NCBI GenBank assembly: GCA_963924565.1
Contig: OZ004607.1
Location: 34,224,001 to 34,288,000 of the forward strand
Direction: 5' to 3'
DNA: 64,000 nt
From: Ascidiella aspersa
Lineage: Eukaryota
Part shown: positions 38,676 through 61,703 of the stretch, piece after piece
Position numbering within the stretch: the stretch's first letter is position 1
Layout: every line of letters begins with the position of its first letter
Position numbers and translations under genes: made by a program
The notes under the pieces: generated by a model
The model's database searches: none
Told to the model about the DNA's origin: nothing
Seen by the model: only the letters and a program-made list of their open reading frames with translations

Positions 38676-39827
38676 ACAACCAGGGGATAATCACGCAATT
38701 TTTGAAGGGTTTGCCATACAATGGTCAGAGTGACGTAAAAAGATTCTTGTAACACCGTGAAGTCATTGAACTGCTAGACGTAAGAAAGTAGTTTTTGATT
38801 AAACCCGTGAGAGAACATGCAATAGAAGTTTAAAAAAGGACTACAACACATAAGTTTATTTACTTTAAATAGGCACATTTTAAAATGTTGAAGAGTTTTT
38901 ATTTAGCTTCGTCAGACAGGTTTAAAAATGCAAGAAGATAAAAAAATATACGAAAATATAGTTTGGCGGTGTATTCTGATGCCCATCGATCCACTCTTGC
39001 AGGCAAATCAATAACACCTGTGTAATGTATAACACTTATAACATTAACCTATGCGTTTATTGTTTTCCAACAAGTAACCTGAGTTACCAGGCAAACATCA
39101 GATTTGCTCTCCCGTTTAACTTTCTTTGTCGCGATACAAGGCTGGGACATCCAGTCGTTGAAATACCCGAGCGACGGGTAACCACCTCGGCTTTGTTGAT
39201 GGGGAAATCACCTAACGGTTCAAAAAAACCTTTTTCATTACGTTTCAAATCGGAAAAGAGGAACCAACCGAAGAGGAACTACTTGTTGCCTGTACAGCGC
39301 CAGTGTTCGTTTTGCGTTTTGTTCATAGCGTGTGCAATGCATCCTTGCCTAATTTTGTGTGAAAATATGTACCGAGCGTATTCTGTCTCAGTTTAGTGCT
39401 GATCAGACGCTTTGCTGTTGATCAAACAGACCAAAGCAATGCTTGTTTTAAATTCGTCCAGATTTGACCTTCAGTCACTTTAGCTATTTCGGCACATTGG
39501 CTTTGTTTGCTAAAATGTTGCTATATAAACGCTCACACACACAATATGTCTATTTATGAAGTCATTCTGGAGTCGTACTGACCAACAAAAAACGGCAATT
39601 ATTATATATGTATTAGCCTACACCGGATGCCTTCGGAAAGGCTTAACGAAAAGCAGTCAGCTTAACCTGGATTGTAGTTCAAGCAAGGCCAGTATAGAAA
39701 AACATGTTGCTATTTAGAACGTTGTTATTCTATTTCAGCGAATATTGAGAACTGAAGCAATTTCGATTTCATTTCCTTTTTATCGTTTGATTGCATTTGT
39801 TATAGCAGTAAACACTGCGCTGCAAGT

Positions 39828-42800
39828 ATGTCGTACACGCCGTGGGATCAAATGGACGATTCGTCTGACGATTATATAGAGAAGTTGAAAGAGATGGGAT
39901 TCAACGAACAGCAAATACGAAAGGCTGTCAACGATACAGGTAACTGCAAAGCCACTGGCAATTTATTTCCGTTGCAGAGAAGCGAGTATTACGGTGACAT
40001 AGCTTTATGTGTGACTTCAGTGCGTTGTCTATATGTGCTTTGTTGTAGGCCCCTCAATAATAAGCTTCCTTGGCACTGTACTTTCGTTTTTGAACGATAT
40101 ACAGAAAGTCTTATGATTAGCTAGTTTAGCCGAGAAGCCTTGGCTTTTAAGTAGGGCAGCCTACGTACAAGGCATTCTCTGTTCTGTCAACATTGACTTT
40201 ACTATAGATCAATACATTCGAACCTGCCGCTTATGTGGAATCGGTTGTGTTGCTTTATTGTAGGGTTTCTACCAGATATGACAAACAATAAAATTAAATA
40301 TTCGTCATTGGATACATGTTTCACGAAAAGTTAGAATTTAGTACAGTACATGTTTCACTAAAGGCATTTATCAAGCTAAATACATAATCCTTGCATATGG
40401 CGTTCTGCAAAATCTGTTCGATACTTTGAAAGAGTAACTGAAGCTTTGTAATTAACCTCGTTTTGTATAAAAAACTTGGCTTACAAATCAACGATAAGAA
40501 TACTTGCAGAATTAAACTTCGCGTTAACCGTAAATGGTAATTAATGTATGAACCAGCGCCGCTGCGTTTTTAAGCAATAAAGTCTGCTTTGTCACTCAGG
40601 CAATAACAACAATTCGCTGCGCTTGCTATAATTATGAAGTTGTGGCCCTTCGCGGAAGTAACCAATGCGGCTCTTTATAGTCTCTTACTGGTTAGCCAAC
40701 CCTGTACTTCGCCTTAGTTTAACCGCCGTTATATCGCACATGTAACGAAGTTATTCGACGTCATATTACCTAACATTTTACTCAAATACTATTGCATATT
40801 TTCACAGGCGCTTCACCCTCCCAAGCATCCATGGAGCTTTTAACCGAGTATATGTTCAACAACCCTATCAGCAGTAAGTGTAAATGGGTACCACAAGGTC
40901 GATTCAATAAATGTCCACCACGTTTTCGCTTGCAGTGGTTGGTTTAAAATCAACCGTTGTGTTACGCAGGTAGTCAACCGAGCGGGTCTTACTACACACC
41001 CTCGTATGAATCGCACCAGGACGACTACTATGAACCAGAACATGATATTCCCCAATCTTCAAGCGCCTATTCGCAGCCTCAAGGTCAACGTAAGTTGTCT
41101 TATCGTATTTTGAAGCATCTTTGTGTAACATATAGGCTTTTCAACCGGTGGATCCTTTATTATAAGGATGCATATGTCAGTTACTTAACATTTATAAATA
41201 AAAAAGTTAAAAAAACAGATCACTTGCTTTTATAAAATATGATTATTTTCCCGTAATCTAACATTAATTATATAATTCGATTAGATTTTTTGTCGACAAA
41301 TTTGTATTTTATGTAACTTTCCGTATTATAACGATGCAGGTAGCCTACATTTTAACAGAGTGGTTTGAATCAGCGTAACATTTAGAATATAATTTGACAT
41401 GAAACATTTAAAAAACGCAGATGTCCCCTGTGGCATCATGTTCTAAGGCCACTAGTTTATAGTTTTAATTTGCCTTATGCTGTTTCAATACAGAACGCTC
41501 TGGACGTTATAGTGCTGTCCAAATTGTACGCCCTGGTCGGAATGGTTCGTTTGAAATGGACTCCAACGAGCTTGAACGGGTGTTTGGTCAAGTTGCTGAC
41601 GTACCAGTTGCTGTGTATTCCTTGGCTGGTGCATTCCGCAAAGGGAAGTCCTTCATGCTGAACCTGTTTCTTCGGTACCTGTGGTTCCAAAAGAAAGGAC
41701 AGGTTAGCCGCCAAAACTATAACTTCAGTTGTTACCGACCCTTACCTTCCCCAAACAATTAAAAATAGTTCACTGCCAAAACAGAGGCGTCCAAATGTCC
41801 ATAATAGAACAGCCACTTATGGTATAATAGATAGATCCGCTTTAGACACTGTATTGCTGTGTGCTCCCATTCAAATAAACTACGTATGTGTATGTGTTGC
41901 ATTAGCTTATACCAGTGCTACCCGACATTTTTTAGTTTGCGACCCACTTTTAATGCAAGTTTAATTGTGCGACCCACATGAGATTTGACGAAACGAATAA
42001 AATTACATAAAACCTGTATCTTCACTACTATCGTACCTACTGACATAGTCAATAGGACACAACACATCTAATTCTTACGGATTTGTGATATTGTTACATA
42101 AATGTTACATACTGATAATGCAATAGTTTCCCACTATAATAAAAAACTGTAACAATTAGAAATGCTTGTCAACCCAACTGAAATGGAAAACGATACCGGT
42201 ATGTTTATAAATTAATGGAGTGTTTCCACACGGCATACGAAGAGTTAGGTTGAACAAACGGCTAAACAAAACTGCCAGTTAACCTAGGAAGGCTTGGTCA
42301 GTTCTTTACAAATTATCAACTGTTTCCAAAGGTTTAAATTCCCAACAGGTTTAAAATGTCGGATCTTAAACAGGCCATCAAAAGTCTTCTTTTGAGCCAC
42401 TTTTCGTATAATTCTTGCATTGTCCCAAGCCTGAGTTAATAAGCTATACGAGAGTGTTCCCACGTTGATTATATTTTGAGAATTTTTCCATGTTAATTAT
42501 AATTGAACAGTGTTTTCATGGTCTTAATAGCATATACTGTGGTTACAGTCTAACAACTGGCTTTCCAACAAAAACGAGGAGGTGCGGAAAGGTTTTGGTT
42601 GGAGAGGCGGACATGATCGAGACACACAGGGAGTCTGGCTCTGGGATGAACCGTTTTTCATAAAAACACCGAGTGGCGAGGTAAGAAGGTACAGGCATGC
42701 TAAAAAGGCTCTAGTACCAACAAACTTGAATAAGTATTAACATAGATAACCATAATTATGTCAACTTGTTTATTATTTAACAATTCATTTGTAGCGACCC

Positions 42801-45800
42801 AACCAAAAACCTTTATACCAATATAATGAGGTCACTATTTTTCAAGTGGCATGTGTTGCAAGTCCCAAAATTGCCATTAATTGTACAGTAATTTAACGTT
42901 CTATTTTTAAGTAACAATTGACTGGTACTTAAGAAATTATAAGATTACTTATTTGAAACTCTGTGATATGTTGTGCTTTCAGGTTGCCTTGTTTCTGATG
43001 GATACACAAGGTTCGTTCGATCACAACACTCCGGTCCAAGGGTGCTCGGTCATTTTTGCTTTGAGCACAATGATAAGTTCCGTGCAAATCTACAACGTTA
43101 TGCAACAGATACAAGAAGATTCGCTTCAGCATTTGCAGGTAAAAAACAAAAGATAAAAATGATGAGACTATTTTTGTTTTAAATCGTATATCGCATAATA
43201 TTTTTAACTTTATTATTTCAGTTGTTCACCGATTACGGCAAAGCAGCATTCAAAACTCGCAAGCTTGAGGGAAAACCTTTCCAGGTAAGATCAAAGCTGT
43301 TTACTGTCTCAAATGCTTCTAAGATTCACAGGCTTATAACCAGGGTTACCATCTGCTAAAACCAAAAAATAAGCACGCTACTAATAACTCGGGGCAGATC
43401 CAGAATTTTTTAGATTGCATCCAAACATAAATAATCCTAATAACAATTGTCATTCTCAGCGTCAAAAAGAGCTTAATGGGGCGAAGCACAAAAAATGGTT
43501 TTATTTGGTTGAATTGGTAAAACTTTTAATATAAAAGAAAACATGTCGCCTTGATTTTACGCTATGAGCAAAGGATTACAATATAAAAGAAAGAAATATG
43601 CTACCATACATAAATTTCCTGTATATGACGCCACATGCTCTTACTGGGCAAAACAAAATTTAAAACTATTTCGGGAAAGACTAATTTACATCGTAGTATG
43701 ATCCTCTTTTGGGAAGATCATGTTCGGTCACTTGGTGTTTAATTAAATTTACTTACCTTATCTACAGAATTTGCTGTTTCTGGTTCGTGATTGGCCAGAC
43801 CCAGAAGTCTCTTTCGGCACGAAAGGCGGTAGAAGTGTTTTGAACAAGTTACTCACTTTGAAAATGAAACACAAAGACTTGGAATCGGTCCGGGAAAACT
43901 TAACGAATTCCTACGAGGACGTTTCCTGTTTTCTGATGCCCTATCCTGGACAGACAGTGGCCGTCAGGGGAAAAAGCCAGGGAAGTTCTCTGCGACTAAA
44001 AGGTAAACTATAAAATGAAATGCTATAAAAATGTACAGATGTGGCCATAGATGCGATTCTGAGTCTGACTCGGGACTTGACGGAGTCGTTTTGTTTTGCT
44101 GGAGTCAGAATCGTGACTCGAATAAGACTACGTAAAACTATCCGAGTCCAGAGTACGACGTGCGCATGCGCAGTACCTAATTTTAAAACTGTTATGGCCG
44201 GGAGAAATTCTGAATATACACCTTATTTAAGTTTCGTAAATTGGTGAAAGGCATGCTGTAGAGTCGGAGCCGGGCTCGGGACTCGACGAAATCGCACATT
44301 TAGCCGGACTCGGGGCTCCGGAGTCCAACTCGGTTTTATTTTATTGGCTGGATTTGGACTCGAGAATTGGACCCGGGTTATTTTTGACTGATCCGCAGTC
44401 CTGGATGTAGGTCATCCGTTTATACGAGTTTGAAAGTTGTAATTAATTTGCATATGTAAACCAATCATGCGATTACCGGAATCCAACCGTTATTATTTGT
44501 TTGCATGTTCCAACAAATATTGTAAATGAACGTTTTATCCTTACAGATGTTGATCCGAAGTTTTTGCACCACTTGGATGAGCTTGTTCAGCATCTGTTTT
44601 CACCCCAAACAATCGTCATCAAGAGATTCAATGGCAATATTGTCAACGGGAGAGATCTGATCAACTTTATGCTGGCTTACTTCGAGGTGTTTAAAAGTGG
44701 ATCGATGCCTAAAGTTGGCAATATTTTGCAGGTATACCGGGCCTTGGTTTAGAGTTCGCGCGTATATTTAAAGAAAATAGTCAAAACATAGGTAGTTTAA
44801 TGTAAAAAAATGGGATTTTATAAGAAGTGAGTCAAACCAGAGTAGGCCTAATTATTATTGTTGGTAAATAAACCAGGTGTATTATGATACGTTTTTTCCA
44901 CCGTTGAGAACCGCCAAACTTGGTTATGCCTACTCCGAACTTTAAAATCGGGAAGCTGTGAGTCGAAAATGTTTGCACATCAGTGGCGTGAAAAGAAAAA
45001 TAAAGTTGTGCTCGTTCTTTCGCTGTTTAAAGTTAACAATATGCGTTAAACTCACAAAATAAAGAAATCAAAAAAAAAAAAAAAAAAAAAAAGTTTTGGT
45101 AGCGTTTCTTGCCTAGCCATTGTTTAGACTTTTCTTGGTGAATTAAAGTAAGCGGTAATAAATCGACATCGGCGCCCACTCGCTGTACACCGTATCTCCT
45201 ACGCGATAATGCGCACTGACTATAGAGAAACCAAGCCCACACTGTTTTTTCTGTTTGCAGGCCAGCGCAAAAGCTGCCATGATCACCGTCATTCAACAAT
45301 GCAAGGAAACCTACGCGAAAGAAATGAGCAAGGTTGGTAAAGAGTCAAACCTATCTTTTAAACACCTAGGACTAAACTTACCAAATACCGCTTTGCCCTT
45401 GGCATATTACACATTTCCCAACCGATGCTCTGCGGTAACAAAAACAAGCTGAAACACTAAAATTACGGGTTGTCCAGATGCATTTCATTTCAGTTATGAT
45501 TTTTTTTTATTTCAGTTTTGTTTTTATGTTGCTTGGTGCAGGTTTTTGAGCAGGTTGGTTTCTTGGAAGGCCAAAAACTTTGTAAACGGCACGAAAACAA
45601 CATGCAACTGGCCTTGTCTCAATACGACGGTCTTCCCAAGCTCGGAGACGATTCATTTATTACCAAGTCCAGACGGAACTTGATCGATCTAATAAACCAG
45701 CAGTTTGCTGTCCACGAGCAAACTAACATCGCTCAAATGGTAAATTTTACGGCCGCGCTAAACTTAATGTTGAGCTTTTTTGACAATTATGGTCCCAAGT

Positions 45801-51800: not shown

Positions 51801-54800
51801 ATGTAAGTTGGTCTTACCACATAAACAAAAAAATATTGAATAGAAATCTATGAAATAAAAAATCTACCATTTACTAATATATGTTAGCTTTAGGTGTTAT
51901 AGGTTTTCCCAAATTTCCTTGTCATCTTTCCAAACAATTTTCCAACGACTAGGTTGTTCACAGTCATCACCTTTGGATTCAGAACAGATTCTGTTAAAAG
52001 TATGGTCCCTGTTAAAGCACATGATTTCACGCTCTTCCTGGATCCTAAAAGAGAATGTCGATTCTTTTGTGCCCATAAAATAGCGTGCATGTGAGCAAAT
52101 TATTTGGTCTATAATAGCAACACCGCCCATTTTATATTGTTTCATTTGCTTTTTGCTAGGTGTAAACATAACCATCTCAGGTAGTAAGCTTTTCAGATCA
52201 TCCATTTCTTCTTCAGTACCATCAGATGCGATGAACACCTTGTCAACTTGAAATTCAGCCATCTTCTTCTTAAGATGATCGGCAACTGTCTTTAAGGATG
52301 GCACGTATTCTTTTCTTGCATAGAGGAAATCTTTTCTTCTTAAATGTGCAGCGATGTATGGGCCCCCCAAAGCAGTTACCCCCTCGCAGGAGTGGTCTTT
52401 CCAATTCGGCGGGATGACAGTCTTGTCTTTCATGTCATCAGAGTCCAAAAATTCTTTGCGAAATTGATTGGCCTCATTTATCAACATATCAGAAAAGATC
52501 ATACTTCTCCGACAGTCCCAGTAGTTTTTGCCGCCGAACATGTCATGAAGCATGTTTTCTGCACGATCTAACATGATGGACTTTGCAGTTGTGTTTGTCC
52601 CGCACAGAGGTTTAATAAAGATGTCAGATTGGCCCTGCACAGAGACGCACTTAAACGAGTGGGCATATGTTTCTTCATAACCCCAGAACCAGCCCCTGAT
52701 TGTGTTGGTGTCCTCGTCAGTTTCGTAAACAGGTGGTTCTAGGCACTCGCGCTGGTGCATTTTTTCAACCCACTCTCCCGACGTCCAACCTTCAGCGTAG
52801 TTTTGCAAATACCACACTTCGTCGATAGCTGGTTCACCAATTTCCTCGACATAATCACTGTACTCCAAAACTGGAACATGAAGGCCTAAACTTTTTATAT
52901 TGAAAAATTTTGACCATGGGATTTTGCTCTGTTCCATATCACTTTCTTTCCAATGATACCCAATTCTACCCCAAGGTGGTAGAACTAAAGTCCAGTCGTA
53001 TTTTTTACAATCGTCACTTTCTCTCATTGCCTTCACAAGATTGGCAACTCTCATGTAGACATCTCTCCTAAGGTTAAAGCCCTCACCTGGATTGCAGTCG
53101 TACAGCAAATAGCGCTTCTGCTTTTCAGCCGCTGTACTCAGACAAATGAAAAGTGACAGTGATATGAATTTCAGAAACATCCTCATTGGTCCTAAATATA
53201 TATAAAAAATTATTAATTTATACAAATACTTTAAAATCATAGTTCTTGATTTTTTAAAGATACAACATCAAAGAACTGAATGACTTGAATAATACATTTT
53301 ATCATAATAATAAACTGTGACCTACAAGTTTTTAATATTAAAACAACACAAAATCCATAATAGATTTAATTAGAAGGTTATTTTTAAGTTTAACATTTAG
53401 TTTTTTTTTTAAAACCATATTTTAAGATGTGAAATTATGTTTGTTTGAACATCTGAATCTGAGGTTTAAAAAATTCAAATTTTTTTTTAAATTAAAATGG
53501 TGCACACAAATAAATAAAAGATGTGATTGAGCACTGGCTTAATAAAATTGTGATTTTACACCTGTCTTAAAACATGGACTGGACTGTATACCTGAAAAGA
53601 GTGAACCATACCCTAGGTTCTGAACTCTACAACAATTCAAACTTAAAAATTAAGTAGTGCAACTTACTAATTCAGGTTTGCGCACAGATTTTTCATAAAG
53701 TCTTAGGTGTGCACTTTTTTATACTTGATACAATAAAGGTCTCAACTTAATTTTAAGTTAATTTACTGTTCAGCAGAGCTACTGCATTTAATTGCTATAA
53801 CTTACTGTGAAGCACAACTATATCAATGACAGAAAATAATTTAACCTTTCTCAAATAATTTCACTATTGTAGCCTGTTAAAGTTTTTACTGCCGCAGGGC
53901 ACAACATAAAAAATCGGGCAGCCATTGACTGAATTGCACGGCTTTTGTGAGGGCCACGTGAAAAACTGTAAGCCCGAGGGCAAAAGCTGTTAAAACATGA
54001 CGTGGCAACACAAAACATTTGATACATCACCTTCTTATCCCAGCAGATAAAGTTACATTTTTGTTTTTGAATTCACTAAAACGTGCTGATTAGGCTTGTA
54101 AACTTTCGCCGTGGCAAATACTGAACTGACTTTATTTACTTATTTTTAAATTAAAAGTTCTGCTGTGCCTCCATTTTATGTCTGTTTAAAAACAGAAAAA
54201 CTAACGTTACCAGCATTTTGGTAGGGAGCTAACTTTAAAAACATATCACATGTTTAATTAAAAAATTATTTAATTCCAAAACAATCTAGCAATATACGAA
54301 TCAAGTTTAAAATAACTATACGAACGTTAAAAGTCGTACCAATCGGTAACAACCATAAACCGGTGCATAATACATTTCTATACTAAATAACACGTTATTT
54401 GTGTGAAGTAGTGACAATTTAAATTGATAGGTAGACAAGTGAATCATGTTTTAACTAGTACAACATGTACATCGGGGTCTTAGAAGGCAAGAAAGTTATT
54501 TCGTTCTGGTTCTTAATTTGAAGGATTTGCTCAGGCATGACCACTACGTCTGTTGGTCATGCAAGACTGAACTTGTGTGTACACAAAGTCTGGCGATAGC
54601 TGTGTGTTGGTCAAAAAAAATTGGCGACAATAAACACCCGATCCGTTAGAAATCAGTGCATTTCTAAGCAAAAAGGTCTACGACAATCAGGGCATCCAAT
54701 GGCAGAAAAGTCTAGACTTTGAGGTCCTGGCAATGCACTGATTTGGACCTTAAGGTAAACTCCCGGCGGAGATAAATGAAAAATATTCATTAAAAGTTCA

Positions 54801-56991
54801 GAAAAAATAACAAAAAATATGAGATAGGATTAATAACACTTGACCCACCTAAACCCTAACGCTAACCCGAATCCTAACCCAAATAATGTGCGTTATTTTA
54901 ATAATTCTTTAAATGCTGGGGAAAAAAGCCCAAACTCGGATGGGCATAAGATGGTTTCTCGTCCATTGTATTTAAGATTATTACGTCACAAATTGAGGTA
55001 TTGGGTCCTGAAGCTGAAGCGTTATAATTATTAAATTATCGCACATTATTTGGGTTAAGGCGCTGGTTAGCGTTTGGGTTTGGTTGGGTCAAGTATTGTT
55101 AAATTTAATCTTCTTATGCACATTTGTTAATGCAACTTAGTGCATTGTCCAAGACATCAAAGTCTAAAAGTCGGACTTTTTGATCCTTTGAATGCACTGA
55201 TTGTCATAGACCTTTTTGCTTAGAACTGCACTGATTTCTGACGGATGGGGTGCAATAAACCACACGGTGGTATTATATGCGACATTTCTCTACAATCACA
55301 ACAGAGCTAATGAATCATTTTTGTCGAAACTATACAATTAAATTTTTTTACCAAATATACAATTTCAAGATTTCACTGCGTTGCCAAAAAAGACATACAA
55401 AACTCAACATTCACTTAACAAACAATTTTTTGGTCATGTTGTCATTATATTTGCATTACAGTAATAATAATTTTACAATCGTTATTTAAAGAATAATCAT
55501 TAATGCTTAAAATAGTTTTAAATTACACACATCCTAATTGCATTCTATATATTATAGGGACTCAAAAAATATTTTTTTACCTTAATCTTATGCCCAACTT
55601 CTCTAACGGAAAGGGACTGAAATGCAATCAGGCCCAATTGCATTCCAGTGTGTTTCCGCCAGAGATCTTTGGCATGGAATGCTTGCCAAAAATCACGCCG
55701 GTGACATCATTAATTATGAAACATCACTGGGCTTGTGAATTTACCAATACAAAATTGTCTTTTTGGCTTATATATTGTCTTATTTTAGTGTGGGATTTCA
55801 GCGAGAAAAAAATTTAGCGTGAATATTTGGCGGCATTAATAAATTTGTTTGGTTCACTAGTGTTTGAGTAAACAATTCATCAAAAATATTTTACTTTTTT
55901 AAAGATATTACTGTTTTACACAAGAAAAATGGTTTCTAGTGCCCACAGCGATAAACAAAACATGTAAATATGGAAATAATACATAAGTCGTTTTTCTGAT
56001 AAGATCACCCTATTAAGACAAACATATTTTTGTAGTTAGGCTAATACATGTTACGTTGCTTGTGAAATATCCCTTAAGGTGTATATAATTAGTGCAATTT
56101 TGATATTTATAACAAAAAAGGTTTTGTTGTAATATTGATCTGGACAACAAAATTATACTAAACAGGCTTAGTATAAATGAAATTACTGGAAGAGGTCAAT
56201 GGAGAAATTTGTCTTTTCAAAGATGCAACTTTTGTCGCTGTGTAACCCAATATACTTTTATATTTCTCCATTTTTTTTTTTAAGTATTTAAAACCTATTT
56301 TAAGGGATCACAAAAATTTGAAGAAGAGCAATACTTAAACAGAAGACACGAACAACTCAAGAATGGAGCTCTTCAAGATTATGAACGAAACACTGACAAA
56401 CGACCGCTAACAGATTTTCAGGAATTTCATCGCAAGCTAGATGAGGACATTGAAAAGCACTTTGTTGCAGTTAAGGAAAGAAATGCAGAAAACAAGGTAT
56501 TTGTTGTCATATCCTTTTAAATAAATGTACTGGAGTGCTGTATTGCCTAATACAACTGCTTGGGACAAGCAATACTTTTAAACAAGAAAATTCCTAGTAA
56601 GAAGACGATTTATGTTCACTTTAAAACTCTTTGTGCTCTAAAGCTCTCTCAATTGGCATTAAGATTGTCAACTGTTTTCTTGAATCATACATAACTGTAG
56701 ACACATTTAGTGGCCCAATTTAAGAATCATGCAAATGCTGTTAAGCCTTTTCTTTCCAAACTTTAATCATCGGAAAGAGTAAATCATAAAAAGAAGGTGC
56801 ATCTTATTTTGATGTGCAATTGTCAGTATTTGCATGACAGATGCTGATGATTAATTTATGACTGCACTAGGAAACTAGCATGTTTAGCAAAAGTAAGGCA
56901 CAGGTTCAAACCAAATTAGATTTCTAATACCTACTTCTGACGACATAGTTGTTATGTTAAAAACCTAAAAAAATGGTGTTTAACTATTCGC

Positions 56992-57026
<35 letters not shown>

Positions 57027-58119
57027 TTCTCTTGTTATAATTGAAAGCTGGATTTAAAAATGAGAAGTGGTAAATTAAAAACATCTTTATTTCTTTTATT
57101 CATGCTTGTTCATATATTTGAAATATGCAACACACATTTAAAACATTCAGTATTATAAGACAAAATGTATACAGAAAAATAGCCTTAGATATATTATAAG
57201 TATATGTAAATAATATAAACCGGCAACTGTTTTCCTTTAAATTTTGTTTGCAAAAGTTTAAACTGCGTTCTGTTTTTTCAGCAAAGAGTTGTGGAGAAGG
57301 CAGATAAAGCCTTAGAAGATATCAAAGAAGAATACCTAAAAACTATGAATGAAGTAAGTTTTGCAAAGATTTAATGTTTTTCAAAATAATTTTTTTAGTG
57401 TGTGGTCTAATGCATTCGGTATTTACTAGCTATAAATCAAACCCAGCTTACTTACATATACCTTCAACTTTTTGTTTACCCTTGGCCGCTTTCTTGATTG
57501 TAAAACTTGCTAGGGTTTTATAATTTCCAATCTGGCTTCATTAATTTAGCTTTGTGACGGAAGATCAGTTGAACCAGAAGAATTGGAAAAGTTTCACCGC
57601 AAAATTTTGGAAATGAGTGATGCGAAAATCCACCAAACACTTGGAAACAAGGAAATTGCAGATCGGATATCAAAGAAACTTCATCGCTATGCCGATGCGG
57701 AACTTCCAAAACTGAAAGAAAACAACAAGAAAGGCGCATCAATTTGGATTCGAAAAGTGTTAGCTGCACTGCCACAAGCACTTATGCATGGCGCACAGAT
57801 GTTCTTCACCAACATCAGCCATCCTAAACGAGCAGTAATGGCTGGACTTGCTGGCGCTGCAAGTTTGGTGAGCGGCGTATTTTCAGATGACAAAGAAGGT
57901 GACAAGAAGCAAGATGCCGCCTTGGACAAGTTTACCCAGCAAAAGTGGGAATCTCTCTCCCCATCAACAAGCGTTGATCCTAAACCTGAAAAGCCGGCAT
58001 CTTATAAAACCGAAGCCCCTCCTCCATACACAAGACAGGCTCCTCGGAGCTCTAAGTCAAATACTCCACAACAATCCTCTTCACAAGAAAGAAAAATGAC
58101 CCCGGAGAGTTTGGACTAG
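39828..58119 (+). CDS. Atlastin-family (GB1/RHD3) large GTPase with N-terminal UBA-like domain and six tandem three-helix-bundle repeats, isoform A (~1083 aa, 21 coding exons)
   Basis: Exons: 39828-39939, 40808-40873, 40970-41089, 41494-41702, 42549-42680, 42983-43138, 43222-43284, 43768-44002, 44547-44731, then pairs 45261-45332/45542-45739, 46033-46104/46555-46749, 47408-47479/47968-48162, 48348-48419/49373-49564, 50803-50874/56305-56496, 57282-57353/57550-58119; total 3252 nt, open frame. G1 GAFRKGKS, G2 [15 protein letters not shown]3 [22 protein letters not shown] and G4 FLVRDW all match atlastin. UBA-like segment [18 protein letters not shown]...ELLTEYMF. Confidence 0.9.
44046..44403. 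mobile_element. Degenerate MITE with GGAGTC/GACTC subterminal repeats
   Basis: Many GAGTC/GACTC motifs, right end GATCCGCAGTCCTG, possible TSD GATGTGGC / GATGTAGG (6/8 match), and internal palindrome TGCGCATGCGCA. Confidence 0.6.
47133..47289. mobile_element. hAT/Charlie-type MITE (157 bp)
   Basis: TIRs CGGTGGTTCTCAACC / GGTTGAGAACCACTG; exact 8-bp TSD ATCTATAA at 47125-47132 and 47290-47297. Confidence 0.9.
48798..49221. mobile_element. hAT-type MITE
   Basis: TIRs CAGGGGTGTCCAAC / GTTGGAAACCCCTA; 8-bp TSD ATATAGGC / ACATAGGC (7/8 match). Confidence 0.82.
50388..50641. mobile_element. MITE related internally to the 54635-55252 element
   Basis: TIRs GACGCTGGTCTGGAATCCTACCACA / TGTGGCAGGATTCTAGACCTGCGCC; exact TSD AAATTCGA (50380-50387, 50642-50649). 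Shares TAACCCAAATAATGTGCGTTA and GCGTTTGGGTTTGG motifs with the 54.6-kb element. Confidence 0.8.
51897..53186 (-). CDS. POFUT2: GDP-fucose protein O-fucosyltransferase 2 (~429 aa), intronless CDS nested antisense in an intron of the atlastin-like gene
   Basis: Motifs [22 protein letters not shown] (catalytic Glu), [49 protein letters not shown]. Signal peptide [21 protein letters not shown] minus-strand acceptor (tatatttag|gaccaATG, exon starting 53191) places the start at 53186 rather than 53240. Minus-strand AATAAA at 51794-51799. Confidence 0.95.
   Translation of the reverse strand: MRMFLKFISLSLFICLSTAAEKQKRYLLYDCNPGEGFNLRRDVYMRVANLVKAMRESDDCKKYDWTLVLPPWGRIGYHWKESDMEQSKIPWSKFFNIKSLGLHVPVLEYSDYVEEIGEPAIDEVWYLQNYAEGWTSGEWVEKMHQRECLEPPVYETDEDTNTIRGWFWGYEETYAHSFKCVSVQGQSDIFIKPLCGTNTTAKSIMLDRAENMLHDMFGGKNYWDCRRSMIFSDMLINEANQFRKEFLDSDDMKDKTVIPPNWKDHSCEGVTALGGPYIAAHLRRKDFLYARKEYVPSLKTVADHLKKKMAEFQVDKVFIASDGTEEEMDDLKSLLPEMVMFTPSKKQMKQYKMGGVAIIDQIICSHARYFMGTKESTFSFRIQEEREIMCFNRDHTFNRICSESKGDDCEQPSRWKIVWKDDKEIWENL
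54635..55252. mobile_element. Long-TIR foldback MITE (possibly Mutator-like) with CCCTAA-like internal motifs
   Basis: Imperfect palindrome: ATCCGTTAGAAATCAGTGCATTTCTAAGCAAAAAGGTCTACGACAATCAG versus CTGATTGTCATAGACCTTTTTGCTTAGAACTGCACTGATTTCTGACGGAT. Inner inverted TAACCCAAATAATGTGCG / CGCACATTATTTGGGTTA. Flanked by the direct repeat CAATAAA(C). Confidence 0.85.
56995..57022. repeat. (AT)n microsatellite
   Basis: Uninterrupted AT run in an intron. Confidence 0.9.
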
Positions 58120-59222
58120 ATTTTAGATCAAACAAATGCAAGAAAAACCCTTGTGTGAATCTACTCTTATAAAGACTTGATTTATGTGTGACCGAAACAT
58201 TTTTCCTTGTAAAGAAAAAACTGAAGTGTATAAAAAATAATCGTGGACAGCTTTGTGGTCTATTTTTAAACCTTGTGTTAGTACCTAATCAAAAAGCGAA
58301 TTCAAAATCATTGCCAGTAAACATAATAAAGTTTAGCTGTATAAAACCAACATTAGTTACATTCAATTTAAAAATTGCTTTTGCAGTCAAGCAGTACCAA
58401 CGTTTCGACCACATATTCTGGCAATCTTCTACAGGGCAAAATAATTGCAACTATAGGCGAACAAATAGGATAGGTGGTCTAAACGTTGATACTTTAATGA
58501 AATTTTGCCGAAAGAACAATTTTACAATTGAAACAATGCCTGGCAGCAATTAGCAATGTATTCATTAGTTACATTGTCCACATGATTTCCTATTTAGTCC
58601 ATATGTGAAACCTATGGTTTGTTCTTTGTTTCCCCGTAACGTTTAGTATAGCAGATTTACTGTAATCGTTTTTCAGCACAAAAGATGTTGTTTTCTGCAA
58701 ATGCTTTAAAATCAGGTTGTTCATTTTATGTTACGGTGGTGTTGTGAGGTATTATTTTGTTCTGAACGCTAAATCTTGCGTAATTTAAAATAAATATTGG
58801 TTTGTAGTCGTGATATATTTATATTTGCTTACCTGTATTAATTTCCAATGTACAAGTGATATTCTGTTTTTAAATAGTTATGAATCCAATGTAGGACTTT
58901 ATGTGAACAATAATATTAAATATTAATGTAGTTAATCGTTGTTTTCTGGTGTCCTCTTTATTGATGTAGTTACTGATGGCTTGTTCCATTAAAGTTGTAA
59001 ATTAAGTTACTTCTTGAAATAAACCTTAACTCGAAATGTAAATAAACGTTTTAAAGTTATATTTCGTTTTTCTTTGAAAAATCACGCAGGACACTATTTA
59101 AATTTATAACCAAAAAACATCGACGTTTAAAAAGGGAAATTTAGTGTTAAGTAATGGGCTGTTGCTCGCAATTTATTCTCGCGCCCCTAATTTTCCAATG
59201 AACCTGACACCGTTGCTTTCAG

Positions 59223-59555
59223 CTCTGCGACGGCAAGTACGTGGATCCGACAGCGTTGCAAGATGCGCACGACAAAGTACTCCAAGAACTGAAGCAGGAA
59301 TGCAGAGAAAAGCTGCGCGGGTACGACGATCTGGCTAATAAATTGCTCGCGGCATGCAGCTCTCAACTGGAAACCCTGTTTGAGCAAGTCAAAGCCAACA
59401 ATGAGAATAACAAGTCAACTTGGCTGCGCAAACAGGGCAGTGCCTTGTGGTCTGCAACCAAAGGAGCCGCTTATGGGTTCTTTTTTGCACCCCCTGGCTT
59501 TCGTCTTTTCGGGGCTGCCATAGGTGGTATAATTGGCTACATAAAGGGATTGTGA
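59223..59555 (+). CDS. Alternative terminal exon (isoform B, ~1004 aa) of the atlastin-like gene; paralogous to exon 57550-58119
   Basis: Phase-0 acceptor gctttcag| at 59222. Begins LCDGKYVDPTALQDAH versus [16 protein letters not shown] in the other terminal exon, and the two share N..K..S.W.RK. Ends in a hydrophobic Gly-rich segment and TGA, with AATAAA at 59796-59801. Confidence 0.8.
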   Translation, partial: LCDGKYVDPTALQDAHDKVLQELKQECREKLRGYDDLANKLLAACSSQLETLFEQVKANNENNKSTWLRKQGSALWSATKGAAYGFFFAPPGFRLFGAAIGGIIGYIKGL

Positions 59556-61703
59556 AACTGAATGACGACTTCAGCACGCCGTATTGTTTATGTATATATG
59601 TATATCCGCCAAAGTGCACAAAATCCTTTAGTATTGCTTCTTTTTGCACTTTGTATAAATCACTTCTGTGGACAATGATAATCTGCGGTTCTGTTTCAAG
59701 CACGTTGCATAGCTTTGCCAATTAGCATTTCAACAATTTTAAAACCCGCGAGGAAGCTTGTGCTCTGTTATTTTATTGAGAAGTATGACGAAATTAATAA
59801 AATTATGTTTCAATTGTTTGGCCATTGCATGTTTGCTTTGTGAAAAACTGCGTTGGTGTATTTTGTTTTCGTTGTGGTTACTCCTAATTATAGCAACCGT
59901 ATTGTAACCTGCCTATTAATATAACTATTGCTTATATAACTTCTTGCACTCTATAAGCCTCATGACTTGTAATTTTTGTGATTCAGTGTAGAAGTAGGTA
60001 TATTAGTACAACTTTGTCGTAGTGATTCTGTAATCGCGGTAAAATATACCTAGTCGTTTAGCAGAAACGACCGTGTTTCAGTTGACCCGTGTGTGAACCG
60101 CTTTAAGTTTTTGTTCGCTTTGTAAAACAGTTGGTAACTGGTCGTGTTCGATAACGCACCTATATTTTGCAAAGTTAGGCCGCACCACCGCGTTGTCAAG
60201 CCAGTTTCAAGACATCTACAACAATTGAAGCATTTTTACCCGGACAACCTATCCCTTTAGGTAAAACTTAACGCTTATCGATTCTATATAGGCTACTTGT
60301 TAATAATCACCCACAAAGCTATGTGGGTGATTATTATTTGCAGTCGTTTAACGATTAAATCAGTAGTACAGTAATAAATACGGCTCTGGCTTCACGGCCA
60401 TAGACGTGTTGAGTACCGTGTTGGAGTGGGGCACTTTTACTTGGGCGACAGGGCAAGTGCCTGTTCTCCAGCCGAAGGGGCCGCTTCTGTGTTTATTTCG
60501 CTTGCCTTCAGAGCTATTGGAGGCCATATCAAGTAATCACAACGGCTGACAATAAAGCCTTATTATCCCTAAGTGTTTTTGTGTATTAACAATACTCCGG
60601 CAAAGTTATTCGTTCTTTATATAGGGCTTTTATCTTATAACATATAAATACGCACATGTTAAAGTTGTTACTTTGCGCACCACCGATTTAATTCGCTCTT
60701 TCTTCGCCTTAAACAACAAAAATTGTTCTCAAATATTAGGTGACCATATAAATTTAGGTTCAAGCGAATGTTTTTCAATCTCCAGTGAAGGTTATGCATA
60801 CAACTGTGAAAAAGCAAACGAGTCATTTTTACAGTCAGCTGATTCAACGTACTCGCGATTAGGCAAATATCTTTATTTCTTAACCGTCCAATCTGGCCAA
60901 GATGCACATTTTGTGCAATAAATCTATTATTTTGGTAGCAAACTGTCATTGAATTTTAACGATCTGCTGTGATTTGTAGCTAAGACTTTATAGATGAACT
61001 ATAATTTCGCTAAAGATGAAACAAAGTAGGAATTCCAGTTCTTTCCACGTCATGGTTAACGTTTATTTCGCCCGGCGAATGATCAAGGCAGGGGAGGGGG
61101 GAAATGGAGGCCAAGACTTAACAGGGGGCGCTGTAATATTAAGTTAAACATACGCGAACACGATCAGCAAAAAAGAGAAAAGGAAATAGAGCCTTTTTCC
61201 TTTTTTCCCCTCTATCTCTCTTTCGCCTCTGTTCAGATTTAGAGGAAAATTACAAGGCCGACCATGCGCGCTTTATACAGGCGACAGTATATAATACAGC
61301 AAAAAACAAACGAACGCGGCGTTTCTTCTATACTTGTTTTAACGGGGGCGATAGGCACTGCAGAGACGATGATTGCAAGGAAAGGAAAAGGGCGAAAAAT
61401 TATACAGTACACGTTCGTAAACACATCTCTGTTGCTGCGTTGCTGCCAATACAGCACAGCTCAGTTGTAATTTAAGGTGCGGCGGGGAATGTGTTATGCC
61501 AGTGCAAAGGCGGAATAGCGAGTTTCTTAGCTGGGAAACAGTGCAAAACGGACATTGTATTGCCCGTACCGACAGCTCTAGTCAAGTTGGATTTTCTGGG
61601 AATCTTACAAGTCTGCTGGTGTAAAAGTAGATGTGTTTCGCGTCGGGATAGAATTGTGCTAGAAATTTGCGATTCTCGCACGAACTACATGTAAAATCGA
61701 AGC

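Follow-up and report, generated by a model that had tools for sequence, protein, structure and literature searches.

The 64,000-nucleotide stretch of the Ascidiella aspersa genome analysed here (the window; positions 34,224,001 to 34,288,000 of contig OZ004607.1) contains, on its plus strand, a gene for an atlastin-related large GTPase, in which G-domain exons are followed by a long run of helical stalk exons. The gene ends in two duplicated, rival last exons, designated A and B, and both of them are used. Each exon begins directly after an AG, lies in phase 0 relative to the donor at 57353 (window numbering is used for all positions in this gene) and has its own stop codon, and the pyrimidine content of the two acceptors is equal (0.65). 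A single BLASTP comparison of exon A with exon B gave 26/87 identities (30%) with an E value of 2e-11, indicating homology beyond chance. Translations, acceptors and alignment bear out a preliminary description of this locus, in which the gene was said to end in two homologous phase-0 exons, and the peptides quoted there were exact. The C-terminal residues are ...TPESLD in exon A and ...YIKGL in exon B, and a CaaX box is present in neither. Coordinates of the terminal exons, and of the features within and after them, are collected in Table 1.

The use of both exons was established from four sequencing runs, X1 to X4, which were aligned to positions 54300-60200 with reads matched at 95% identity. 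Runs X1, X2 and X3 are contig-kept runs of one study, and molecule type is absent from their records; X4 is a raw-read stranded RNA-seq run with the same species label but from a different study, and its counts were taken from about 6% of its reads. X1 and X3 showed an even depth of about 44-94 across introns and exons, and thus behave as DNA. X2 had a depth of 0-6 in introns compared to 80-170 in exons and holds spliced contigs, and it therefore behaves as RNA. Within the gene, the first mates of X4 reads mapped to the minus strand only, which fits RNA transcribed from the plus strand. The joint leading into the penultimate exon, 56494>57280 with the cut moved by +2 (that is, 56496>57282, GT..AG), was represented by four X4 reads and by an X2 contig of depth 117. 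The joint to exon A, 57353>57550, has an exact GT..AG and was found in one X4 read (side 51) and in an X2 contig of depth 170; the joint to exon B, 57353>59223, likewise exact, was found in two X4 reads with two starts (side 25) and in an X2 contig of depth 43. Placement of these two joints was unambiguous ('both' = 0). Cross-mapping of reads from paralogues was ruled out as their source, as paralogue exons share 30-88% protein identity compared to the 95% at which reads were matched. The preliminary description had proposed that one donor is spliced to either last exon, and had named junction reads as the check and a lack of reads joining 57353 to 59223 as the refutation; we recovered both joints in two runs from two studies, that to exon B in the two X4 reads and the X2 contig. 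Both C-terminal forms exist in RNA, and the joints speak to existence, not to ratio or regulation.

Table 1. Terminal exons, tail features and 3' untranslated regions (UTRs) of the GTPase gene, in window numbering
Feature	Position	Strand	Details
Antepenultimate coding exon	56305..56496	+	64 codons, phase 0, stalk; AG at 56303-56304, GT at 56497
Penultimate exon	57282..57353	+	24 codons; donor aatgaa/GTAAGT at 57353, common to exons A and B
Alternative last exon A, coding	57550..58119	+	189 codons, then TAG; acceptor ttag/CTT. In order: two stalk helices, N..N..W.R motif, weakly hydrophobic two-segment region (TNISHPKR loop), 78-residue S/P/T-rich tail
A-type hydrophobic region	57742..57882	+	Residues 65-86, loop 87-94 (TNISHPKR), residues 95-111; KD19 hydropathy maximum 1.41
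S-SVD motif, A tail	57964-57978	+	Conserved
PPPY (PPxY-type) motif, A tail	58018..58029	+
Isoform A 3' UTR	58120..59060 (end approximate)	+	X4 depth fall; AATAAA at 58325, 58789, 59018 and 59041
Alternative last exon B, coding	59223..59555	+	110 codons, then TGA; acceptor tcag/CTC. In order: two stalk helices, N..N..W.R motif, short Gly-zipper hairpin with PPG turn at extreme C-terminus
B-type hairpin	59463..59552	+	GAAYGFFFA-PPG-FRLFGAAIGGIIGYIKGL; residues 81-110; GxxxG at 97, 101 and 105
Isoform B 3' UTR	59556..60380 (end provisional)	+	Extends beyond AATAAA at 59796; next plus-strand AATAAA at 60373

RNA also extends into the 3' UTRs of both isoforms. Over successive bins of the isoform A 3' UTR, X4 depth was 3.2, 4.0, 6.8, 0.55 and 1.47, and then 0.02 in the bin 59028-59224, and an X2 contig at depth 169 spans 57999-58541. 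The fall in depth after 59027 fits a 3' end of isoform A at about 59.03-59.06 kb, matching the signals at 59018 and 59041. Over the isoform B 3' UTR, X4 depth was 1.16, 2.32 and 0.93 as far as 60200; one X2 contig, 1105 nt long, begins at 59223 and continues beyond 60200. The AATAAA hexamers that had been listed for A (58789, 59018 and 59041) and for B (59796) lie exactly where they were placed, but 59796 did not hold as the poly(A) site of isoform B, as RNA continues past 60200. Hexamers alone prove nothing in this sequence, because AATAAA is frequent in the window (182 observed versus 145 +/- 11 in shuffles). A high-copy repeat is located within the isoform A 3' UTR at 58437-58633, where depth reached 8e3-1.6e4 in X1 and X3 and contigs carried variant internal deletions.

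To place the GTPase, single exons, rather than a spliced protein model, and natural full-length relatives served as queries. Pfam PF02263 matched window exons 41556-41680 (E 4.6e-7) and 43771-44013 (E 4.2e-8). When 1.84 billion representatives were searched with a profile built from twelve terminal exons (A1), 11 proteins matched at E <= 1e-3, of which P0011, a Cys-rich repeat protein, looks spurious. P0002 (XP_076818142.1) is named 'guanylate-binding protein 7-like isoform X2', an automatic NCBI label, and comes from the ascidian Clavelina lepadiformis; P0018 is its longer isoform of 983 residues. The window exons are collinear with P0018 at 35-68% identity, from the N-terminal region (39801-40121) through the G domain (45-68%) to exon B, which matches the C-terminus of P0018 at 37% over 109 residues and that of Clavelina protein P0027 at 40%, and also weakly matches an internal repeat of P0018. 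Compared to known structures, P0018 was closest to atlastin-3 and atlastin-1 over residues 84-484 (E 5e-73), with GBP5 and GBP1 at about 1e-17. PF02263 was the only Pfam family on P0018 and P0002, on neither of which the GBP_C domain PF02841 was found, and it was also the only one in the precomputed Pfam lists of P0027, P0028, P0035 and P0037. These last four proteins, three from Clavelina (P0027, P0028 and P0037) and one from Ciona intestinalis (P0035), were the further long relatives among the best 120 matches of a whole-protein search with P0018, the rest of the 120 being ordinary atlastins of about 540-730 residues or other GB1/RHD3-type proteins. A search for full-length relatives with the stalk and tail of P0018 (480-983) recovered its own cluster alone. 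The long relatives have 917-1047 residues, versus about 540-580 for atlastins, and a stalk far longer than one bundle. Of the features that define an atlastin, the G domain and first bundle are present, but the strongly hydrophobic double segment after one middle domain is not; of those that define a GBP, neither the pairing of PF02263 with PF02841 nor the C-terminal CaaX box was found. Judged by these sequence comparisons, the gene is an atlastin-related large GTPase, with a GBP/atlastin-type G domain, an atlastin-like first bundle and a non-atlastin architecture.

Related terminal exons occur elsewhere in the A. aspersa genome. Exon B matched 23 places at E <= 10, and with exon A as the query only exon A and exon B themselves fell below E 1e-3. 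On contig C3, at 7.66-7.84 Mb, the matches form tandem pairs about 1.1 kb apart, of which four are intact and one is degenerate, with an AG acceptor in 14 of the 16 exons inspected. The first exon of a pair (the 'up-type', QCNGRYVEE...NRTLWYR...) encodes 105 residues with an amphipathic tail; the second encodes 70 residues and has NQPDCVII or CVIT right before the stop, which constitutes a CaaX box. One of these pairs forms the end of a complete paralogue, the exons of which are collinear with those of the window gene. At L018 (G000:C3:7745001-7755000) the complete paralogue is followed by a tandem repeat of 56305-like, 57282-like, up-type and CaaX-type exons. The nearest paralogue (L021:8955-9446; G000:C1:34389255-34389452) lies on the minus strand about 100 kb downstream of the window. 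Its G-domain exon is 88% identical and its exons are collinear at 60-88%; its last exon is B-like only, reading ...KKKGGCAIQ and then about 100 codons without a stop, and an A-like exon is absent. The tail of this paralogue may be decaying or remodelled. The G-domain exon 42911-43153 had 39 genome matches at E <= 1e-5, several of them with in-frame stops, and these cluster on C3 (7.67-7.95 Mb), C6 (5.19-5.25, 8.16-8.19 and 11.53-11.65 Mb), C2 and C1. On these matches, the family looks like a birth-and-death multigene family.

Both tail types were also found in other organisms. The A-type relatives are P0004, P0008, exons on metagenome contigs and the C-terminus of Clavelina P0028, and the B-type relatives are P0001, P0003 and the C-termini of Clavelina P0027 and P0018. 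The loop FFTN(I/L)SHPK is present in 6/7 A-type exons, to which S-SVD is also common, and F(F/L).PPG is present in five of the six B-type tails, which share the GG..G zipper as well. PPxY occurs in six of the seven A-type exons, compared to 0/6 B-type exons, and the seventh A-type exon, L038, is truncated before the motif position. These type-specific motifs hold across organisms at 26-42% identity. An exon homologous to 57282-57353 precedes the terminal exons both in the paralogues and on the metagenome contigs; all seven of the latter have this penultimate exon (KHLEEKGE...KEEYLKHMNQ) followed by an A-type exon, and six have a third, 'X-type' exon with an amphipathic tail about 0.5 kb after the A-type. 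Two of the contigs, L034 and L037, carry a B-type exon 2.2 kb beyond the X-type, with A, X and B types all intact. Each terminal exon on the metagenome contigs has an AG acceptor, an LCD(G/E)K start and its own stop. No X-type relic was found in the window, either between A and B or after B, and X-type queries matched only A and B. In a tree of 25 terminal exons (106 columns), exon A of the window grouped with the foreign A types (support 96/92), and exon B was unresolved near mg1_B, P0003 and the CaaX exons. The two kinds of tail are both old, and the order A then B is kept in another organism. In Clavelina the A and B tail types are annotated on different genes, one type per protein, and these genes are about equally similar to the window G-domain exon 42911-43153 (68%, 68% and 70%). 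The A, B, X and CaaX tails do not exhaust the variety in this family. Among exons from other organisms, P0010 (82 residues) and P0005 (100 residues) differ at their ends, one having a polybasic run ending in ...GFCC and the other, P0005, ending in a more hydrophobic stretch, VVFSGVLIAGKLALLIVSFAGTG.

The tails of the window gene were compared to those of atlastins by hydropathy. The KD19 maxima of 1.41 (A) and 1.44 (B) contrast with two adjacent segments of 1.69-2.66 in 7/8 sampled atlastins, the eighth of which, P0062, has a single hydrophobic segment. The view of the tails as hairpins unlike that of atlastins, as originally put forward, agrees with these values. AlphaFold2, run per exon with shallow alignments (14 and 11 rows), predicted helices at residues 9-30 and 35-62 of exon B and at residues 9-31 and 34-87 of exon A, with pLDDT of 74-86 over residues 11-60. 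Taken with the weak match of exon B to an internal repeat of P0018, the models suggest indirectly that both exons complete the final stalk bundle (bundle 6 of the preliminary description) with the same pair of helices. The A tail, in which S, P and T together make up 37% of the 78 residues, is predicted to be disordered. In atlastins a C-terminal amphipathic helix after the hairpin is needed for fusion; isoform B stops at its hairpin, with no such helix behind it. The earlier treatment of the Ser/Pro tail as filler did not stand, as it contains the conserved S-SVD and PPxY motifs. PPxY is a classical ligand of WW domains, and its conservation in A-type exons suggests that exon choice may affect binding partners no less than membranes. 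The GxxxG repeats of B are a motif, and therefore no proof that it belongs to a glycine-zipper family; Pfam Bacteriocin_IIc (PF10439) matched B residues 70-109 with E 0.032 and 14.6 bits, which is below its cut-off of 27.1.

Other features were observed in introns of the gene. The intron preceding exon 56305-56496 contains a very high-copy repeat at 54497-55284, which had a summed contig depth of 6e4-3e5 in the DNA-like runs, was read on both strands in the RNA run, and showed many loose ends at 54634/54635 and 55252/55253; this repeat is probably a transposable element. An antisense, intronless open frame of 447 codons lies at 51897-53240 on the minus strand, inside an intron of the GTPase gene.

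We consider it probable that the duplicated alternative last exons are interchangeable targeting modules that are swapped on one atlastin-related GTPase. In the mechanism that we propose, splicing of 57353 to exon A (57550) would lead to cleavage and polyadenylation at about 59.03-59.06 kb, upstream of B, and skipping of A and its poly(A) sites would permit splicing to B (59223). This would be a classical alternative-last-exon choice, in which distal splicing competes with cleavage and polyadenylation after the proximal exon. Either exon would supply the two stalk helices and the N..N..W.R motif before the products diverge, with A adding a two-segment, weakly hydrophobic region and then a disordered tail with S-SVD and PPxY, and B adding a short Gly-zipper hairpin alone. 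The modules would occupy the position of the atlastin membrane hairpin or the GBP CaaX box, and the choice of exon would change how and where the GTPase attaches and, for A, its WW-domain partners as well. The two tails probably decide where, or with what, the GTPase attaches. By analogy with atlastins and with the paralogues, they may be membrane anchors that direct it to different membranes. Membrane attachment is suggested by the atlastin-hairpin position of the tails, by the layout of two arms and a turn in both of them, and by the paralogues' CaaX box at the corresponding site, which points to a membrane-targeting role of the module.

A number of results weigh against this reading. Both KD19 maxima are under 1.6, the classical KD19 threshold for a transmembrane segment, and a buried G-domain segment of the relatives scores 1.40-1.75. 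The AlphaFold2 models have pLDDT <50 in both tails, and helices are confident only over about residues 9-62. No Pfam family scored above cut-off on tail A or tail B, or on the tails of the A- and B-type relatives, and neither tail had a usable match among ESM Atlas neighbours. With respect to transcription, the depth pattern of X2 suggests that it is RNA, and its record is itself silent on the point; X4 supplied tiny numbers of reads for the two joints (1 and 2); and the sides of the joint contigs in X2 are short (23 and 28), so that these contigs are weak taken alone, although such sides are what a branch point in k-mer assembly should yield. No pile-ups of read ends marking the 3' ends of A or B were reported in X1-X4 over the aligned region. 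Among the metagenome contigs, a B-type exon was present in 2/4 of those reaching at least 2.5 kb past the X exon; L039 and L040 have an A-type exon with an in-frame TAG after 65 codons (L039:2072-2266 and L040:4116-4310), and no B-type exon was found in them within about 4.5 kb. When the tails were removed from the tree (68 columns), support for the A clade dropped to 90/84, and a tree uniting exons A and B of the window (win_A and win_B) was not rejected on this helical part (p-AU 0.143). The 68-column tree is therefore suggestive rather than significant, and a duplication predating the species split rests mainly on the tail motifs and the exon order. Finally, the four members of the P0028 cluster, which are Clavelina isoforms, differ, apart from point changes, only at the N-terminus, and none of the database records of relatives that we found alternates A and B in one gene.

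An alternative is that the choice between last exons is genuine and the tails serve as regulatory or partner-binding modules rather than as membrane anchors, in which case localisation need not differ between the isoforms. In that event A could recruit WW-domain proteins such as NEDD4-type ligases via PPxY, B could self-associate through its glycine zipper, and either tail could autoinhibit the GTPase, as the C-terminus of ATL2-1 does. A hydropathy that falls short of transmembrane values and matches a soluble-core segment, the conserved PPxY in 6/7 A-type exons and the low confidence of the AlphaFold2 tails all fit such modules, as does the finding in PMC8624677 that ATL2-1 and ATL2-2 differ only in the C-terminal extension that sets autoinhibition. 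However, in paralogues this position is taken by a lipid-anchor signal, the CaaX box, both tails consist of two hydrophobic arms around a turn at the place of the atlastin hairpin, and the family member P0005 has a more hydrophobic end. We regard partner-binding modules as the less likely explanation, but not a negligible one.

It is much less probable that only one end works and that the other exon is a by-product, with A arising from premature intronic polyadenylation or B from rare read-through splicing. The low joint counts, and the single tail type carried by each of the annotated Clavelina relatives that we found, would suit this explanation. However, both frames are intact and their type-specific motifs are conserved across organisms at 26-42% identity, X2 assembles both joints (depth 170 and 43) and X4 covers both 3' UTRs, and the A-then-B order is kept in another organism. 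Least credible of all is that exon B is left over from a tandem duplication or belongs to a separate downstream transcript, and we give this almost no weight. Relics of this exon do occur, as the nearest paralogue has a degenerate B-like exon without a proper stop, but for exon B of the window both possibilities are ruled out by the reads and the contig that join 57353 directly to 59223, with no other first exon required, and exon B matches the C-termini of full-length annotated relatives.

If the reading of the last exons as interchangeable targeting modules is extended to the whole family, it is conceivable that they are part of an ancestral exon-cassette system that lets one atlastin-derived GTPase scaffold choose among four attachment modules: a peptide hairpin followed by a PPxY tail, a Gly-zipper hairpin alone, an amphipathic helix or a lipid anchor of the CaaX type. 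Such a family would stand, still today, midway between the hairpin anchoring of atlastins and the prenyl anchoring of GBPs, and would have grown by birth and death to dozens of copies, in the way that cell-autonomous immune GTPases are expected to do. Regulation of exon choice, for instance during infection, would retarget the same GTPase rod to different membranes, and isoform A would in addition be coupled to ubiquitin ligases via PPxY and an N-terminal UBA-like region. As a single joint claim this is speculative, and we think it doubtful that all of its parts hold together.

The membrane attachment mode of dynamin-superfamily GTPases largely decides their function, both for GBPs and for atlastins. 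Under the targeting-module reading, a single gene, and paralogues in another form, would swap the attachment module via duplicated last exons, with each module conserved across species. Because the same G domain and stalk are combined with four kinds of tail, the family could provide a natural and directly testable system for the contribution of the anchor, and it links atlastin-like and GBP-like anchoring. There is also a consequence for annotation, as database records of the relatives give one tail per gene and no C-terminal isoforms.

The principle that alternative last exons change the C-terminus of a GTPase is already known. In our literature searches we met no account of an atlastin- or GBP-type GTPase whose anchor module is exchanged via duplicated last exons. 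Mammalian GBP1, GBP2 and GBP5 use a CaaX anchor after a helical stalk, as stated in PMC9005921. They resemble the window gene in belonging to the PF02263 G-domain family, and their C-terminal lipid-anchor signal is matched by the CaaX exons of the C3 paralogues, but the G domain of the window family resembles that of atlastins far more than that of GBPs, P0018 and P0002 gave no match to PF02841, and both window tails are without CaaX. The same review notes an antiviral atlastin in Bombyx and leaves as a question whether invertebrate atlastins gained defence roles. In the human isoforms ATL2-1 and ATL2-2, according to PMC8624677, splicing alters only the C-terminal extension and sets the autoinhibition of fusion, with ATL2-2 restricted to brain. 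Like the window gene, ATL2 encodes an atlastin-family GTPase with a splice-dependent C-terminal end. However, the hairpin and amphipathic helix are common to both ATL2 isoforms, whereas in the window gene it is the hydrophobic module that is swapped, the alternative exons are mutual duplicates and there is no strongly hydrophobic hairpin. The C3 paralogues are of the same family and have the same arrangement, with two homologous terminal exons in tandem after the penultimate exon, both having an acceptor and a stop, but their tails are amphipathic and CaaX, in contrast to the hairpin-plus-PPxY and Gly-zipper hairpin tails of the window gene.

Alternative last exons also distinguish the KRAS 4A and 4B isoforms, a case similar to that of CDC42. 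For CDC42, bioRxiv 10.1101/366369 and PMC10883850 describe alternative last exons with separate 3' UTRs, giving a prenylated CaaX form and a palmitoylated CCaX brain form that differ in localisation. CDC42 and the window gene are alike in that a GTPase gene has alternative terminal exons that give different C-termini, with a membrane-targeting role that is known for CDC42 and putative here. They are unlike in that CDC42 is a small GTPase of the Ras superfamily whose isoforms differ by about 10 residues and by the type of lipid, whereas the window gene encodes a dynamin-superfamily, atlastin-like GTPase, its swapped exons are 110 and 189 codons long and include two stalk helices, and its tails are peptide hairpins, with CaaX present only in paralogues. 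One feature of CDC42- and KRAS-type switches, the joining of one donor to either of two terminal acceptors, was found in the RNA of the window gene.

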